The notes beneath the pieces were generated by a model that had not been told where the DNA came from, did not search any database, and saw only the letters and a program-made list of their open reading frames with translations. Positions 13,019-21,137 of a DNA stretch of 64,000 nucleotides are shown here, piece by piece. Within the stretch, counting starts at the first letter, position 1; each line of letters begins with the position of its first letter. The translations under genes and the position numbers were made by a program. Source of the DNA: Piromyces finnis finn (taxonomy: Eukaryota; Fungi; Neocallimastigomycota); the NCBI GenBank assembly GCA_002104945.1, contig MCFH01000008.1:868001-932000 (forward strand). The letters run 5' to 3'.

Positions 13019-14483
13019 TTATACAGCGTTCGATTCAAAATTAGAAGCATTTATAAATCCATATATAGTTGATTTAACTTCCTGTAATGTAATTCTTTTA
13101 CTAATATCAATTTCAAGACATTTCTTGATTAACTGATTAAAATTCGGATCGTAAGTTGAATCATCCGGTATTACAACCTGACTAAGAGTTGAAGTATGAG
13201 TTCCATTATATGGAATTTCACCATATGCCATTGCAAACATAGTACAACCAAGTGACCTTTTCAAAAGTTAATATATTATTAAAAAGATAAAACAAAAAAT
13301 AAATAAGTTAATTCTATTTTATTTACCAAATGTCAGTTCTTTCATCGATTCTCATGTCTACCAATGGCTCGAAAAATTCTGGTGGTCTATAAGTTGATGT
13401 TACAGTCTCTGATACAAAATCTTTTAAAACTAAAGCACTCTGTCTAGTTGATAATGTTACTATTTCAATTATTAATTTAAAAATTAAAATATACATAATA
13501 AATAGACTTTTCTATTATAAATTGGCTTAATATACTATTTAAATAATATATAATGTGTAATTAAGTTTTACATCTTGCTGGTGAAACAGAACCTAAATCC
13601 ATTAATATTGCGTGCTTCTCATTATCTAGAGCTACATTTTGAGGCTATAATTTATTTATCAATTAATTTCTAATATGATGTATAAATAATGTTATTAAAA
13701 ATAAAATACCTTTAAATCTCTATAAGCAAGGCATGGTTCTTGTCTAAAAATATATTAATTAAATTAATATATAATACAATTTTAAATACTGACTAATATT
13801 ATTAACTTATTAATATTTTTATAAATATTTACTTATGAAATTCTTCTAAACCATCACAAATATCAATTAAAATTTGTAATATTAAATCAAAAGATAAACC
13901 TTTTCTTGTTCTTTTAAAAGTTACATTTATTAAATCTTGAAGAGAACCATTTTGACAGTATGGAAGTAATAGCATTCCTTCTGAAGTTCCATCCTTCTTT
14001 TTTACAATTGCATAATCAATTAATTTTAGAATTCTGTTACTGCCTTCAACAGATTTATGAGCATTAATTTCATTTCTTACACGTTCTTCTTGTTCTGGAA
14101 GTTGAATACTAATATTTAATTTTATATTTCCATATTTCATATAGATGTTTAATAAATGTTTGTAATTAATAATATATATTTAAATTCTTATTGCTATTTT
14201 TCATATTTAATTATTTATATTATTCTATAATTATAAGATAATGGGTTTTATCTTACGGAATTCTTTTTAAGGCATATAAAGGAGAATTTGGTGAATCAGA
14301 CTTTCTAACTAAATAAACATATGCAAAACCACCTTCACCAATTTCTCTTAAAACAGTATATTCGGTTTCATTTAAAGTAATTTTTGGATATCCACCTAAC
14401 CGTGAAGTTATAAATACCTTAATACTTGCTACAATCCATGCTAGAGTATTTATTAGATAATTTATAAAATAACTTAAATCCAT
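13019..14483 (-). CDS. STK16: Ser/Thr kinase of the NAK family, STK16/MPSK1/Env7 type; about 7 exons
   Basis: IGEGGFAYVYLV (Gly loop), YALKRI (VAIK Lys), EINAHKSV (alphaC), LAYRDLKPQNV (catalytic loop), AILMDLGSV (the DLG variant typical of STK16), TYRPPEFFEP, IDERTDIWSLGCTMFAMAYGEIPY. Confidence 0.9.
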
Positions 14484-14741: not shown

Positions 14742-17635
14742 ATGTTAGAAGAAAATGTAATAGAATATAGAATATAAACATTAAAGAAGAGAAAATATTA
14801 AAGAATTATAAAATATTTTAATTTTATAAATATCAATGTATACATACTTAAAATTAAAAATTAAATATTCAATAAATAATATAATATCTTTTTAGGATAA
14901 CGTCAGAAATGATAACGAATTAATAAACCAAATAATAATAGCTAAAGAATTAGAGAAGGTGTTTGAATATGAAAAAGTTTTAAAAATTTATGAAAATTTA
15001 TCAGGAAAATTACCTCATTCTTGTGAAATTCTAATAAAAAAAAAAATCGAAGAAACAAAAGTAATAAATTATAATTTAATTTAAAACTTAGATATCCTTC
15101 GAATAATTAATAAATAATATTTATATAAAAGTCAAAAATTAATGTAATAATTAATAATGATGGTTTCTATTATGAGCCGTCTAATTCAAATTACTATTTG
15201 CCGGGAGGTTTTGGAATTTCAAAATCAAAATTTCAGAAATTAACTTTATATGTAATAATTATAAATATAATATAGTATCATTAAAATATTCTTAAAAATA
15301 TTAAATTGATAAACCTTTATATAAAATATATTAATATATATTATTAGCAAAAAGATGGAATAAAATGGTAAAAATATAAAAATATAAATGATTAATAAAA
15401 TAATAATAATAATTTTATTTTCAATGAATGTAGGATATACAGTATTTATCATGAAAAAAAATGTGGATGTAAGTAATTATTACTTAATAAAGAAAAGACA
15501 AATAATAATAATTTTTAAATATATTATATAAAAGGTATATTAGCAGATGATAAAGAATTAAATAAGGAAAGTCAGGTATTTTATACTTTATAAAATAATG
15601 TTTTTATTTAATACATACATTTATACCCCTTTATAAAATTATTAATTATATTATTAATTAGATTATAAATGTTATAGACAGTTTATATAATTCAATGAAA
15701 GCAGGAAAATTCCTTTTAATTGTGTAAATATAACATAATAAATTGTTATATATTCATAAATATATACAATTTCTTCTTGTAATATTAAATATTTTTAATA
15801 ATAGACCTTTAGAAAAATTAAATTATTGGGAGAGAATTATTAAACATTGGTAAATATAACTACTTAAATTTAATATAAAATTAAATAGTAGTATATTTTA
15901 ATGATATTTATTAAAAATTATATATAATATATTTTAATAGTTTACAAAATGCTATTTCAAGTAAAGTATTATATGCATTTAATATTGAAAAATAAATTAA
16001 TTAAAAAACAACATTCTAAATTGAATATATTAAATATTTATGAAGTATTTATATTTAATTCAACAACAAAAAATAGACAAGAAAAAATAAATTATATAAA
16101 TAGTAATACTGGGATATTAATCACTACATATGATATGATAACTTATAATTATACAACATTATTAATTAATTGGGATTTAATAATATGTGATGATGGTTGT
16201 AGAAAAATAAATAATCATAAAACAAAACGATATCAAGCATTAAATAAAATTAATACAAAATTTAAAATTTTGTTATCAGGTAATGTTATATTTTTAGATT
16301 CTTAAAATTTAAAATATTTAATTGTATAATTTGTTAATTGATTTTATTTTATGTTTATTCTCTTTAATTTATGTTATTTTTTTTTTTTTTTTTTATTTTG
16401 ATAAATATATAAATATATAGATAATCCATTACCAAATAAATTTTATGACATTTACTCAATTTTTAATTATTTAATGGGAAACATTAAAATGTTTGGGACA
16501 TATGAAGAATTCAAATCTAAATATATATTAAAACATTCAAATAAAACTAACAAGAATAAAAGTGTAGGAGTTGGAAATATTCTTAATGAAGATCTACAAT
16601 ATTTTATACAGTGTTTTGTTTTAAGAAGAGAAAAAGATAATCAAGAACTATATAATGAAACCGAAGAATCTGAATATTCTGATATTAACGATGATGGTAT
16701 ATAAGTATATATAAATCAAAAGTTAATGTATAAATACATTAATTAAAAATAAATATATATTTGATATTATGTAAAAATATTACAAAAAAATAAGAAACTT
16801 ATGAAAACATGAAGAATTTTATTATAGAAGATGATGAGTATATGGAAGATGAAGATATTGATGAAAACGATAAAAAATATTCTAATATTTATTGGAAAGA
16901 AGAATATTATAATGAAAAATCAAATTCAGATACAGATAATGATAATGATTTAAATAAAGAATTATTGGAATTAAATATAGATAACGAAAAAAAAGAAAAG
17001 GACCTTAATAATAGAAAAGATTTTTTTTACATAAAACCTGACTCTGACCAAAAAAAAAAAAAATACATAATAGAGAAAAATACAAGTCAAACTACAGTAA
17101 TTCATAATTATTATATTACAAATTTATTAATATTAATTTATTAAAACTTTTTTTTTTTTTTAAAAAAAAATTAATTATCGAAAAAAAGGATAAATACACA
17201 TTTAATAATAATGATATTTGTAGTTATTGTAATAAGGTTATTATCGAGAATGAAGATGGTAGCATCCGATGTTGTAAATGTGGAAACTATGAGCATTTTA
17301 CTTGTTCAGGTATTCCTTACAATACAAATATTGATAGTAAAATTAATTCACTTCGCTATTATTTCTGTCATTCATGTAGAAATTTTGGTAAAAAATAATA
17401 GTTTAAATTCATTTATATTTTTTAATTTAATAATATTATTTATTATTTACTTATTTATTAATAACACATCTTTAAATAATATTATATAGTAGGCTTAAAA
17501 GAACATTTCTACTCTCTTAACAATGAAAATAAAATGTCAATTGAATATGATAAATCATTAAATAGTAAACTTGTTAAAGAAGATGATTATATTTTAAAAT
17601 ATCTTCAAACAGAAGATACATATGATAAAATATTA

Positions 17636-17670
<35 letters not shown>

Positions 17671-18080
17671 AAAATTAAATGAGAAATATAATATAATGAA
17701 TGACGATGACAACATTCTAAATATAACTGGCAAATTCGGTATGGAAACATCGATAGATAATTTATCATCTATAATGAAAAATTCAAATGATAATATAATA
17801 TATAATATAAATAATGATGGCGATATAATTAATGAAAACTATCAAAATTACCAAGATTATATAAATGAATTTAAGTAAGTATTAATTATTTTATTTTGTT
17901 TTATTTAAATTAAATTAGATTAAATTAAATATATATTTATATTTATATAGAACATATTTAGAAAAAAAAGACAAATTGAACGCTTTAAATTCATTATTAA
18001 ATGCTAATAAATTAAATAGCAATGATTTAAATCTCCATTGGTGGATTATCAAAATAATTATAGATTTAAATATTATTTAA
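14742..18080 (+). CDS. PICH/ERCC6L-derived pseudo-ATPase: TPR - degenerate SNF2_N lobe - acidic region - PHD finger - C-terminal TPR-like helix pair; open reading frame across about 12 exons
   Basis: Spliced translation includes KLTLY|QKDGIKW|IYSIYHEKKCG|CILADDKELNKESQ|IINVI, matching PICH [38 protein letters not shown]. It also includes GILITTYDMI, WDLIICDDGCRKINNHKTK, KILLS|DNPLPNKFYDIYSIF and CFVLRREKD. A C4HC3 finger lies at 17219-17377. The C-terminal YQDYINEFK|TYLEKKDKLNALNSLLNANKLNSND resembles the PICH C-terminal TPR. Confidence 0.75.
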
Positions 18081-18262: not shown

Positions 18263-21137
18263 TTATATAACATTATTGATAAATGTAATGACTTTATCAA
18301 TATTAACTTTTTGATCATTATCTTCGCATGATCTTGACAATGTTATAATTTCCTGTTTATTTAATGTTATATTAAAATATAAAATTAAATTAAATTATAT
18401 TTTAGTCAATATATTTCTAAATTATTTTTCTTTATAATAATTTTTATAATTTAAATTTAATTACATGTGGATTTAAGTATTTCTGGAATAATGGTGTAAT
18501 GATTCCAATGAATTCTTCTCTTTTAATATTTTTTGTAGTTGGAAACATTTGTTTCAACCTTTCCTTATCTTCAGCACTTAAAATACCCTTGATTTTTGGA
18601 ATAATAAGTTCGAAATTTGACATTGGATATTCATCTTTTTTGCATTCCATATAATTAAATACAAATTCATCAGCATCAATCAATGTGAATATTTGACTAT
18701 TAATATTAAGTACTGCTCCAACATATAAATCTTTGCTTGTGTAATATTCAATTGGCTCGGCTGGTTGTTGACTATTAAATATATCTTCTTCTTTTTCTTC
18801 TTCTTCTTTTTTACTTGGTTTCTTAACATAATTACTTTCTAAATATTTTCCACCAACAATACCAGCTGTTTTTTTAAATACTTTTGCAAAATAACCTGAT
18901 GTAATACCAGAATTCCTTTTAAAAAAATAATTATAAATAAATGTCTATAAGTAATTATAATAAAATAAAATTAAAATTAATCTTACCTCTGCATTGGTTC
19001 ATAAATTGAAATCTTATCATCAGATACATGATAACTTATAATAAATCTTCTATCCATATTTTGTTTATATTTTGATTCCTTATATTAAAGATAAGCAAAT
19101 TAATGATCATTCTTTTAAAATAAAAAAAAAAGAAAAGAAAAGAAAAGAGAAAAAAACGTTTCTTTTTGATAATATATTTTTATTGCTTACCATTTTAGCA
19201 ACAAATCTTAAAACTATATGATCATTTTCTAACATTTTAATAATATTTTTTTTTGGTGGTTGTAACACAATGTGCTTTACAGAACCTAACGAATCTTCTT
19301 CAGATCCAAATCCATTATATTGCGGAATTGACTTATAATTTATTATAAATTTTTATAGTTTTAGTTTTCAAAATCACTAATTGATAAATAATAATATGTT
19401 ATTACCTGTCTTGGGATTTCTCCAGGTTTTTCTTTTGGAATATTATATGGCTTAAGTTCATTTTCATTCATTCCAAGATTTTTCATAAAATAATATTTTG
19501 TATAATCATCACAATCATAACTATATTATAATAATGATTTAAATAAAAAATATATTGAATTATTTGTATCACTACATTTAATTTTCTATTATTATATAAT
19601 CATTTTACATTAAACATTTTCTTCCCAAAACATTAATAACTGATCCAATTTTAAAGTCAGACCAATGATATTTTTCGTTTGATTCAAGGTCTTTATATTA
19701 TTATGTTATTTTTGTGATAATAAGCATATTAATTATTTATAAAATTATATATTTTCTTAAAATATAGTTGATGTTGAAAGACAATTAATTATACTAATAA
19801 ATTATCTTTTATATTTACCTTTCATATCTGTAAATATTTTGGGTAATGGTTGCTTCTTTAGAAGGAGAGGAAATGGACTTTTTCCATCATTTGGTTTATG
19901 AACTTCTCTAACCTCAACACAATCATCAACAAGATAATAATGAATAATAAACTCATGTATATCACCAAATAAATTACTTCTATCATCCCAAACACAATAA
20001 AATCTTAATACTTTACGATCAAATTCAATAAAGTGTTTTAATGGATATTCCTTTGACTCTTCAACTTTAATTCTAATAGGTTTATTTCTTTCTAATTGAT
20101 ATGGATCTTCTGGCATTGGTTCTGTTGGATTTAATTCAGTATTTTCAATTTCTTGATAATATCTCTTTTTAATTTTTATATATTAATTTAATATTAATAA
20201 TGCATGTGTAGAAATTTTAAATATATTTTTTAATAATTAATATTATAAAATATAAATATTTATATTTTTAATTTTTAATATATATTATATATATTTACTC
20301 TGGTAAATTCATCACAATCAACAATTCTAATTGTTTTAGAATATAATTTAATATTGATTCCAATATTAAAATCTTTTGGAGTGTAGAACTCACTACTTGA
20401 TTTTGGAATCTTTTGTCTACTAATAAGAACACCTTGTGGTATTCCACTATTTTCAACTTGTGGTTCATTAACTCGCATTGTATTATCTTCTAAATAATAA
20501 TAAATCACCACTTTACGTAAATGATACTGTTCAGATGATTGATATGTTGATTCTTTATAATAGCCAAAAAAACGGAGAACCTTTACATTTATTTAGAAAA
20601 TATATATAATTTTAATATCATTGTTACCAAAAATATAATAATTAAAAATATAAAAATTATAAATACCATTTTATCATATGCTATATATGATGGTACTTTA
20701 TTAAGTTGTTGCTCATTTTGGACCTTTAGAAGTTCGTCATAACTGGAAATTCCTCCTTTTTTATATGGACAAAACTCCTTATTTTTATGAGTATATATAA
20801 TATATGGATTATCTTCCATTTCTTTTAATAATTCTTCAGGTGAAATTTCAGCCTGAACTGGCAATGGATCACCACCAATACCATATTTTAAGTTTCTTGT
20901 CGTCATATAGCCATCATGATACCATAGTGATTGTGATCTTCGAAAATCATTTTTCTAATTATCAATTTAAATAATAATATAATAGTAAAAAGATTATATT
21001 TTAATATCTAGACAATATACATATCTATAGTATCATATTAAAATGTATACAGTAATATCTTCGAAAACATTTCCAGGAAGAAATGGTAAATGTTGAACAA
21101 TATTTGATTTCTCTACTTTTTCTGTTGTATCAGTCAT
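18263..21137 (-). CDS. EFHC1: EFHC1/Rib72 axonemal microtubule inner protein with three DM10 domains
   Basis: N-terminus QHLPFLPGNVFEDIT|...FRRSQSLWYHDGY. DM10 blocks: YDK|VLRFFGYYKES...VVIYYYLEDNTMRVNEPQVENSGIPQG; FDRKVLRFYCVWDDR...YYLVDDCVEVREVHKPNDGKSPFPLLLKK; VLRFVAKM...RRFIISYHVSDDKISIYEPMQR|NSGITSGYF. Confidence 0.92.

Follow-up and report, generated by a model that had tools for sequence, protein, structure and literature searches.

Positions 14742 to 18080 of a 64,000-nucleotide stretch of Piromyces finnis contig MCFH01000008.1 (the whole stretch is called the window below; it is very AT-rich, with about 17% GC) carry on the plus strand a chain of short open segments with GT..AG borders, which we read as one gene of 15 exons. 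Its 683 codons, from an ATG at 14742 to a TAA at 18078-18080 that is the sole stop, encode 682 residues. Our best explanation, which we consider probable as a whole, is that this is an expressed gene of about 682 codons for a pseudo-enzyme derived from PICH/ERCC6L that now serves as a non-catalytic scaffold. The structural and evolutionary part of this explanation is very likely correct, while the adaptor mechanism is offered tentatively. On this reading RecA lobe 1, with its DNA-contact motifs, and the TPR modules at both ends are inherited from PICH. Motifs I, II and III no longer have their nucleotide-binding chemistry, all of lobe 2 and the PICH family domain (PFD) are gone, and the stretch that separates lobe 1 from the C-terminal TPR has acquired an acidic tract and a PHD finger.

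An earlier note on this DNA had proposed such a gene, spliced in frame at GT-AG introns, and the motifs that it had picked out were all recovered: DDKELNKE at 15546-15569, DDGC at 16189-16200, the PHD finger at 17219-17377 and FVLRREKD in exon 11. Counterparts of the gene were found on metagenome contigs L001 (12 kb) and L010 (10 kb), the sequence of a further contig, L007, being nearly the same as that of L010; together with the window these give the three species compared below.

Domain content of the gene product

Domain and profile searches were run exon by exon. The Pfam SNF2-rel_dom profile matched exon 10 with 31 bits (cut-off 24.9) over profile positions 87-160 and continued on exon 11 at the consecutive positions 163-224 with 16.9 bits. 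When compared by hhalign with a 20-sequence alignment of ERCC6L-like proteins (A6), which takes in lobe 2 and the conserved post-helicase block, exon 10 reached a probability of 98.7% (E 3.7e-16) and exon 11 one of 92% (E 5.8e-7).

None of the three motifs of an active ATPase (GxGKT; DExH; TGTP) is present in the gene. In the Walker A region (motif I), where ERCC6L proteins have MGLGKT (tblastn, 21 ERCC6L proteins), the window reads ELNKE and both L001 and L010 read ELDKE, with both P-loop glycines and the Thr replaced and the Lys of GKT kept in all three species. Motif II has changed from DEGH to DDGC or DDSC, the Glu and the His being replaced in every orthologue, and motif III from TGTP to S-D-[NVI]-P, with a codon split across the intron at 16280-16420. 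The DNA-contact motifs of lobe 1 are conserved: Ia as LIVP..L..W, Ib as ILITTYD and Ic as KINN.KTK. The SNF2 lobe 1 with degenerate motifs I, II and III described in the earlier note is thus borne out, and the degeneration is the same in all orthologues. From these replacements we infer that the protein is without ATPase activity.

The same note had reported the second RecA (HELICc) lobe, which supplies motif VI, as missing, and this also held: apart from SNF2-rel_dom and PHD, no Pfam domain matched any exon, so that Helicase_C was not found, and three-species profiles of exons 12 and 14 did not match lobe 2 in A6 (P 0.66 and 0.43, respectively). Nor was the PFD recovered, exons 12 and 14 matching no part of A6, the post-helicase block included. 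Comparison of the whole 64-kb window with 240 ERCC6L-like proteins gave a match at the exon-10 region only. Exon 14 gave no Pfam match and no ESM Atlas lead; a weak tblastn match to the lobe-2 start of plant CHR24-like proteins raised it as a candidate lobe-2 vestige, which was rejected on the profile-profile comparison given above.

In place of lobe 2, exon 13 encodes a C4HC3 PHD finger whose ligand pattern in the window is C-x2-C-x13-C-x2-C-x4-H-x2-C-x22-C-x2-C, the first Cys codon lying at 17219 and the last at 17375-17377. All three species share the eight zinc ligands and differ by no more than 3 residues in the lengths of the two long spacers. Pfam PHD matches were obtained in all three orthologues, with a best E of 2.4e-6 (21.1 bits, E 3e-4, for exon 13 of the window). 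Nearly all PDB matches of the exon-13 profile are PHD fingers, PHF23 being the best (E 4e-4) and SIZ1, SHL, KMT2D, PHF20, BPTF, TAF3 and PHF13 being found as well. The ligand spacing and the Pfam matches in three orthologues substantiate the canonical finger that had been described, and no PHD occurs among about 240 ERCC6L-like proteins listed (precomputed Pfam lists), so that within these relatives the architecture is new to the ERCC6L family, as had been claimed. Upstream of the finger, exon 12 contains a block invariant in the three species (16815-16900), FII[ED]D[DE]EY[MI]ED.DIDENDK.Y.NI.WKE, in which a hydrophobic core is followed by an acidic run; its beginning, FII[ED]D[DE]EY, may be a look-alike of a SUMO-interacting motif.

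PICH is defined by an SNF2 ATPase, a HELICc lobe, a PFD and TPRs at both ends (PMC8565832). To look at the ends of the gene product, a PICH TPR profile was built by jackhmmer from an ERCC6L-like C-terminus; it gathered both C- and N-terminal TPRs of the family. It was run against the 1449 segments obtained by six-frame translation of the window, L001 and L010, and all of the top five places went to exon 15 or exon 2: L010 exon 15 came first, then L001 exon 2, L001 exon 15, window exon 15 and L010 exon 2. Exon 15 was matched in all three species, with E 0.003-0.07; exon 2 was matched with E 0.0034 in L001 and E 1.4 in L010, and its window copy was unmatched. In hhalign, exon 15 (P 0.002) and exon 2 (P 0.004) aligned in TPR register. 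In the reverse direction, the exon-15 profile fell on the last 50 or so residues of 25 out of 25 ERCC6L proteins (631-1396 residues long), best in those of Rhizophlyctis and Borealophlyctis, and the best match of the exon-2 profile was residues 123-145, near the N-terminus, of the chytrid ERCC6L P0132 (Borealophlyctis; E 3e-5). Of the two PICH-like TPRs proposed in the earlier note, the C-terminal module at the protein end therefore stands, whereas the N-terminal one is suggestive at the profile level. The single TPR matches are modest, but such agreement in position is not plausibly due to chance, and we accept PICH ancestry as the best reading and regard it as likely.

Evidence against, and alternative explanations

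Several observations weigh against the explanation given above. The domain evidence comes from exons searched one by one. Taken by itself, exon 10 gives a RAD54-like protein as high a score as the PICH-like ones, and the single TPR matches are weak, with the E-values given above and hhalign probabilities of 9-15%. The score of the window PHD copy lies under the Pfam cut-off of 24; AlphaFold2, run on the three-sequence alignment of the PHD exon, gave a poor model (predicted local distance difference test score 56), for which Foldseek found no fold match at E <= 0.001. The start exon (14742-14756) is plausible only, and lies outside the transcript cover. Finally, Drosophila SUUR, an SNF2-related protein once predicted to be inactive, was found to hydrolyse ATP, which illustrates that 'dead' calls made from sequence can fail, although SUUR does have a putative Walker A lysine, and the mutant in this residue was the negative control of that work (PMC9917439).

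The alternative that survives best, although we consider it decidedly improbable, is that the SNF2 lobe derives from another subfamily (RAD54, ERCC6/CSB, ERCC6L2 or another Rad54-like group) and that the TPR-like look of the ends is due to convergence or to helical repeats that arose by chance. Exon 10, compared exhaustively by HMMER with 1.84 billion representative proteins, gave five matches in all at E <= 0.001. Two of these are exon-sized fragments, 75-80% identical and carrying DDGC or DDSC, to which a word search added a third; the non-orthologous ones are two PICH-like proteins (P0005 and P0003) and a RAD54-like protein (P0004, 437 bits to zebrafish Rad54) that comes within 2-5 bits of the best PICH-like matches. 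PDB sequence searches with exons 2, 10 and 11 confirmed SNF2, leaving the subfamilies unseparated and the PICH TPR not found, and the subfamily comparison covered ERCC6L-like proteins and this RAD54-like one. Against another origin, the five best segments for the PICH TPR profile are all copies of exon 2 or exon 15, at the two ends of the coding sequence, from the three species, and the exon-15 profile falls on the extreme C-terminus of every ERCC6L protein compared, chytrids best. The exon-11 profile also favours the ERCC6L-like proteins, giving the RAD54-like one 8 bits and rank 219 of 240, where ERCC6L-like proteins score 18 bits in the median and 46 bits at most. ILADD stands ahead of the P-loop, just as it does in the ERCC6L proteins that tblastn aligned.

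As to the two PICH-like proteins, the relatives of P0005 are themselves named 'ERCC-6-like' (from animals, chytrids and, as CHR24, plants). P0003, encoded on contig L008, is part of a canonical PICH-like gene with SNF2-rel_dom, Helicase_C and a C-terminal TPR (E 1.6e-12) from an organism of 27% GC. It was considered as a paralogue from the present lineage and rejected, given this GC content and the fact that no exon besides exon 10 matches it. This gene (L008:170-2910, plus strand) has few introns and is present in two Logan assemblies, and no active relative in the whole protein library is closer to exon 10 than the exon of this gene that carries motifs I-III.

It is also conceivable, though quite unlikely in our judgement, that the PICH-derived protein is still a motor or part of one, by residual nucleotide binding or by pairing of lobe 1 in trans with a separately encoded lobe 2. 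The Lys of GKT and motifs Ia, Ib and Ic are indeed conserved, and SUUR is a precedent for a wrong prediction of inactivity (PMC9917439). Against this, the P-loop glycines and Thr, the Glu and His of motif II and motif III itself are replaced in every orthologue, and neither the gene nor the 64-kb window nor the flanks of L001 and L010 yielded a lobe 2.

The loss of all catalytic motifs and of half of the enzyme, together with the Asn/Asp low-complexity runs that are expanded in L001, could instead suggest a transcribed decaying duplicate, a pseudogene with no function of its own. The comparison between species makes this very improbable. With window exon peptides as tblastn queries, exons 2, 3, 5-8 and 10-15 were found in the same order in L001, and all of these except exon 8 in L010. 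Intron phases and exon order are common to the window, L001 and L010/L007; the phase-1 intron inside the Asp codon of the motif III remnant is kept in all species, and the Walker A exon has identical borders in L001 and L010, the motif reading ILADDKEL[ND]KE[SN]Q across the three species. Since exon order and flanking genes are shared, the L001 and L010/L007 loci are orthologues in at least two further species. Their contigs have about 17-18% GC (measured for L001 and L007).

Identity to the orthologues is 43-78% for exon 2 (L001 and L010), 73% for exon 5 in both contigs, 70-80% for exon 7, 85% for exon 8 (L001), 74-81% for exon 10, with DDGC or DDSC retained, and 64% for exon 14 (L010), exon 15 being the most conserved (78-90%). 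Between the window and L010 the exons are 74-85% identical in DNA, whereas the introns have fallen to shuffled-sequence identity. The ratio of nonsynonymous to synonymous substitution rates (dN/dS; Nei-Gojobori, summed over exons) is 0.24 for L001, 0.21 for L007 and 0.19 for L010, with about 0.1-0.25 for exon 10 of lobe 1 and a value near 0.05 for exon 15; these ratios are rough, since synonymous sites are near saturation and the composition is extreme. Decay is contradicted by a frame of 682 codons open across 14 introns, which is open in each of three species although their introns are saturated with changes, by 'dead' motifs that are themselves conserved and by spliced expression in three studies, in line with the earlier judgement that the gene is not a pseudogene. 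When the exon-10 alignment was compared with a metagenome collection, none of 598 pattern matches was confirmed; this collection evidently does not contain the orthologue contigs.

For the transcript check, contigs from four public runs belonging to three independent studies were aligned to the window. These runs contain roughly one in two of the words sampled from the stretch, as expected with exons alone, and the contigs lack the introns at GT..AG borders, which indicates that they derive from spliced RNA. They span exons 2-15 (about 14896-18045): a single contig of 1687 nt corresponds to 14896-17624, and further contigs cover 17681-17871 and 17955-18045; 17625-17680, which holds the Asn repeat, lies outside all listed contig pieces. 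Six micro-exons of 20, 35, 41, 62, 45 and 20 nt add up to 223 nt, exactly the contig offset. The junctions 15251/15348, 15367/15434, 16279/16421 and 17874/17951 were deduced from contig offsets and one mismatch, unlike the listed joints. Contig depth falls to about zero in 16294-16414, the only bin that is wholly intronic, and exons have a GC content of 21% vs 9.5% for introns. The exon chain of the earlier note is thereby confirmed by spliced contigs, and the contig spanning 14896-17624 places the PHD finger on the same mRNA as the SNF2 part, as that note had also proposed. If intron 11 were retained, the frame would meet a TAA at 16702, and there is an ATG at 16809. The idea that two adjoining genes were wrongly joined, one for an SNF2 fragment that stops at 16702 and one for a PHD protein that begins at 16809, is nevertheless refuted for the assembled transcripts by that contig, by junction 16696/16795 in four of four runs, by the near absence of depth in the intronic bin and by the same arrangement in L001 and L010.

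Exon chain and neighbouring genes

All exons lie on the plus strand. A putative exon 1 (14742-14756) provides the ATG and four codons before a donor GTAATA; it was read from the sequence, outside the aligned contigs, and is needed because exon 2 has no Met. One contig has 19 unplaced bases upstream of 14896. Exon 2 (14896-15060), present in the transcript contigs, encodes the N-terminal TPR-like helices (about residues 6-60), and exon 3 (15132-15251; junction 15060/15132 in four runs) a linker with the invariant NSNYYLPGGF just upstream of the Q motif; it is colinear with the part of ERCC6L that comes before the Q motif, in an alignment short of significance (P 0.08). The Q-motif remnant QKDGIKW is on the 20-nt exon 4 (15348-15367), which was placed from the sequence and whose length is required by the 223-nt offset. 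Exon 5 (35 nt, 15434-15468) encodes IYSIYHEKKCG, with junction 15468/15535 in four runs, and exon 6 (15535-15575) the degenerate Walker A, ILADDKELNKESQ. Exon 7 (15662-15723), between motifs I and Ia, and exon 8 (15805-15849), which carries the motif Ia region (LIV)PLEKLNYWE, both have their junctions in four runs, as does the 20-nt exon 9 (15941-15960; junctions 15849/15941 and 15960/16046).

Exon 10 (16046-16279) contains motifs Ib (ILITTYD), II (DDGC for DEGH/DEAH) and Ic (KINNHKTK), and exon 11 (16421-16696) the motif III remnant S-D-N-P, the helical region of lobe 1 up to FVLRREKD and the start of the acidic tract. The Asp/Glu-rich tract continues in exon 12 (16795-17096), which has the invariant FII[ED]D[DE]EY..D.DIDENDK block; its acceptor at 16795 is in frame and lies 33 nt (11 codons) upstream of a candidate acceptor at 16828. 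The PHD finger occupies exon 13 (17189-17387), with junctions 17096/17189 and 17387/17490 in transcripts. Exon 14 (17490-17874; contigs 17489-17624 and 17681-17871) comprises a conserved region, the Asn run and the start of the C-terminal TPR module, and exon 15 (17951-18080), the last, carries ALNSLLNANKLNSND and completes the C-terminal TPR-like module with the stop TAA at 18078.

Exon 14 begins at a tandem acceptor, TAG|TAG (NAGNAG, 17488-17493), whose two sites are in frame and one codon apart; the contigs use 17490. In the same exon L001 has a long Asn/Asp low-complexity expansion (L001:7600-8170) that is absent in the window, where the run is 11 Asn long (17637-17669), and in L010.

Downstream, on the minus strand, there is a DM10-domain gene of the EFHC-like flagellar type (19805-20511; Pfam 81 and 94 bits on two exons), and a DM10-domain gene is also found downstream on the minus strand in L001, L007 and L010. 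This neighbour would fit a flagellated (zoosporic) organism, and, like the 17% GC and the TPR matches that are best in chytrids, it agrees with a gut-fungal origin. Upstream, on the opposite strand, lie exons of a protein-kinase gene (13832-14483), Pkinase matching 13832-14140 with 25.8 bits. Just above the Pkinase-matching open reading frame sits one of 76 residues (14253-14483, minus strand) that has 76-residue counterparts in L001 and L010 and a GxGxxG-like kinase motif, yet gives no Pfam match of its own.

Proposed role, significance and known systems

We tentatively propose that the protein works as an adaptor; the earlier note had suggested a non-catalytic chromatin reader or adaptor, or a regulator of a full-length PICH paralogue. 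It would be incapable of ATP hydrolysis and translocation; its PHD finger may dock on the histone H3 tail, the dead lobe 1 may hold DNA or offer an interaction surface, and the two TPR modules may recruit partner proteins, as the TPRs of PICH do. The latter recruit BEND3 and other partners (PMC8565832). A bolder version, which is unlikely, is that the PICH gene itself, and not a spare copy, has been converted in this fungal lineage to a motor-less histone-reading scaffold. In that case the PHD finger, and no longer ATP-driven tracking on stretched DNA, would tie to chromatin the partners that PICH gathers through its TPRs, and a eukaryote would handle anaphase DNA bridges, or re-use that machinery, without the PICH motor. 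A canonical PICH of this lineage was not among the 120 best matches (down to 501 bits) of a query with the chytrid ERCC6L P0064.

SNF2 proteins are defined by a two-lobed ATP-driven motor, and for this reason a conserved, selected and expressed relative that has only lobe 1, with dead motifs, is unusual. The gene is a natural experiment on the abilities that the TPR modules of PICH and one dead RecA lobe have without translocation, and it brings a PHD finger into the ERCC6L family, at least among the relatives listed. It gives a handle on the scaffold vs motor functions of PICH, as well as on the rewiring of chromatin and chromosome-segregation machinery in an extremely AT-rich fungal lineage. 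Its reach is limited, the gene being lineage-restricted (three or four species-level variants in public data).

In the PHD fingers that read methylated H3K4, a Trp two residues before the zinc-binding His is a residue of the methyl-lysine cage. The exon-13 finger resembles such readers (PHF23, SIZ1, SHL/EBS, BPTF, TAF3, PHF13 and PHF2) in its C4HC3 spacing and its best PDB sequence matches, and at the position of the cage Trp each of the three species has an aromatic residue, which is Y, F or W. It differs from them in that the other cage aromatics are not evident and the scores are weak (E 4e-4 at best).

Drosophila SUUR, a chromatin protein, shares with the product of the window gene an SNF2-related N-terminal region. 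SUUR was long held to be catalytically inactive and has no nucleosome-remodelling activity (PMC9917439). It hydrolyses ATP in vitro (PMC9917439). It also belongs to a separate lineage from the window gene and is not known to carry a PHD or TPR.

An SNF2 domain and a PHD-type finger are combined in one polypeptide, as in the present gene, in CHD3/4/5, ATRX (as ADD), SHPRH and Trypanosoma brucei SNF2PH. These proteins, of the Mi-2, ATRX, SHPRH and ISWI-like subfamilies, have both RecA lobes and intact motifs, and the finger is N-terminal to the motor in the CHD and ATRX proteins and inside the motor in SHPRH. To our knowledge, none of them has a PHD in place of lobe 2. In Trypanosoma brucei SNF2PH the PHD is required for targeting (PMC6893287).

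The closest known systems are PICH/ERCC6L proteins, including the chytrid 'ERCC-6-like' proteins of Rhizophlyctis rosea (P0134) and Borealophlyctis nickersoniae (P0132). In common with PICH, the gene product has a putative N-terminal TPR, an SNF2 lobe 1 (Q motif, ILADD..., TTY, KIKN..TK and FLRR.K) and a C-terminal TPR at the very end. Unlike PICH, it has motifs I, II and III destroyed, the HELICc lobe and the PFD gone and an acidic tract and a PHD finger inserted, in 682 residues vs about 1000-1400 in the full-length ERCC6L proteins listed.

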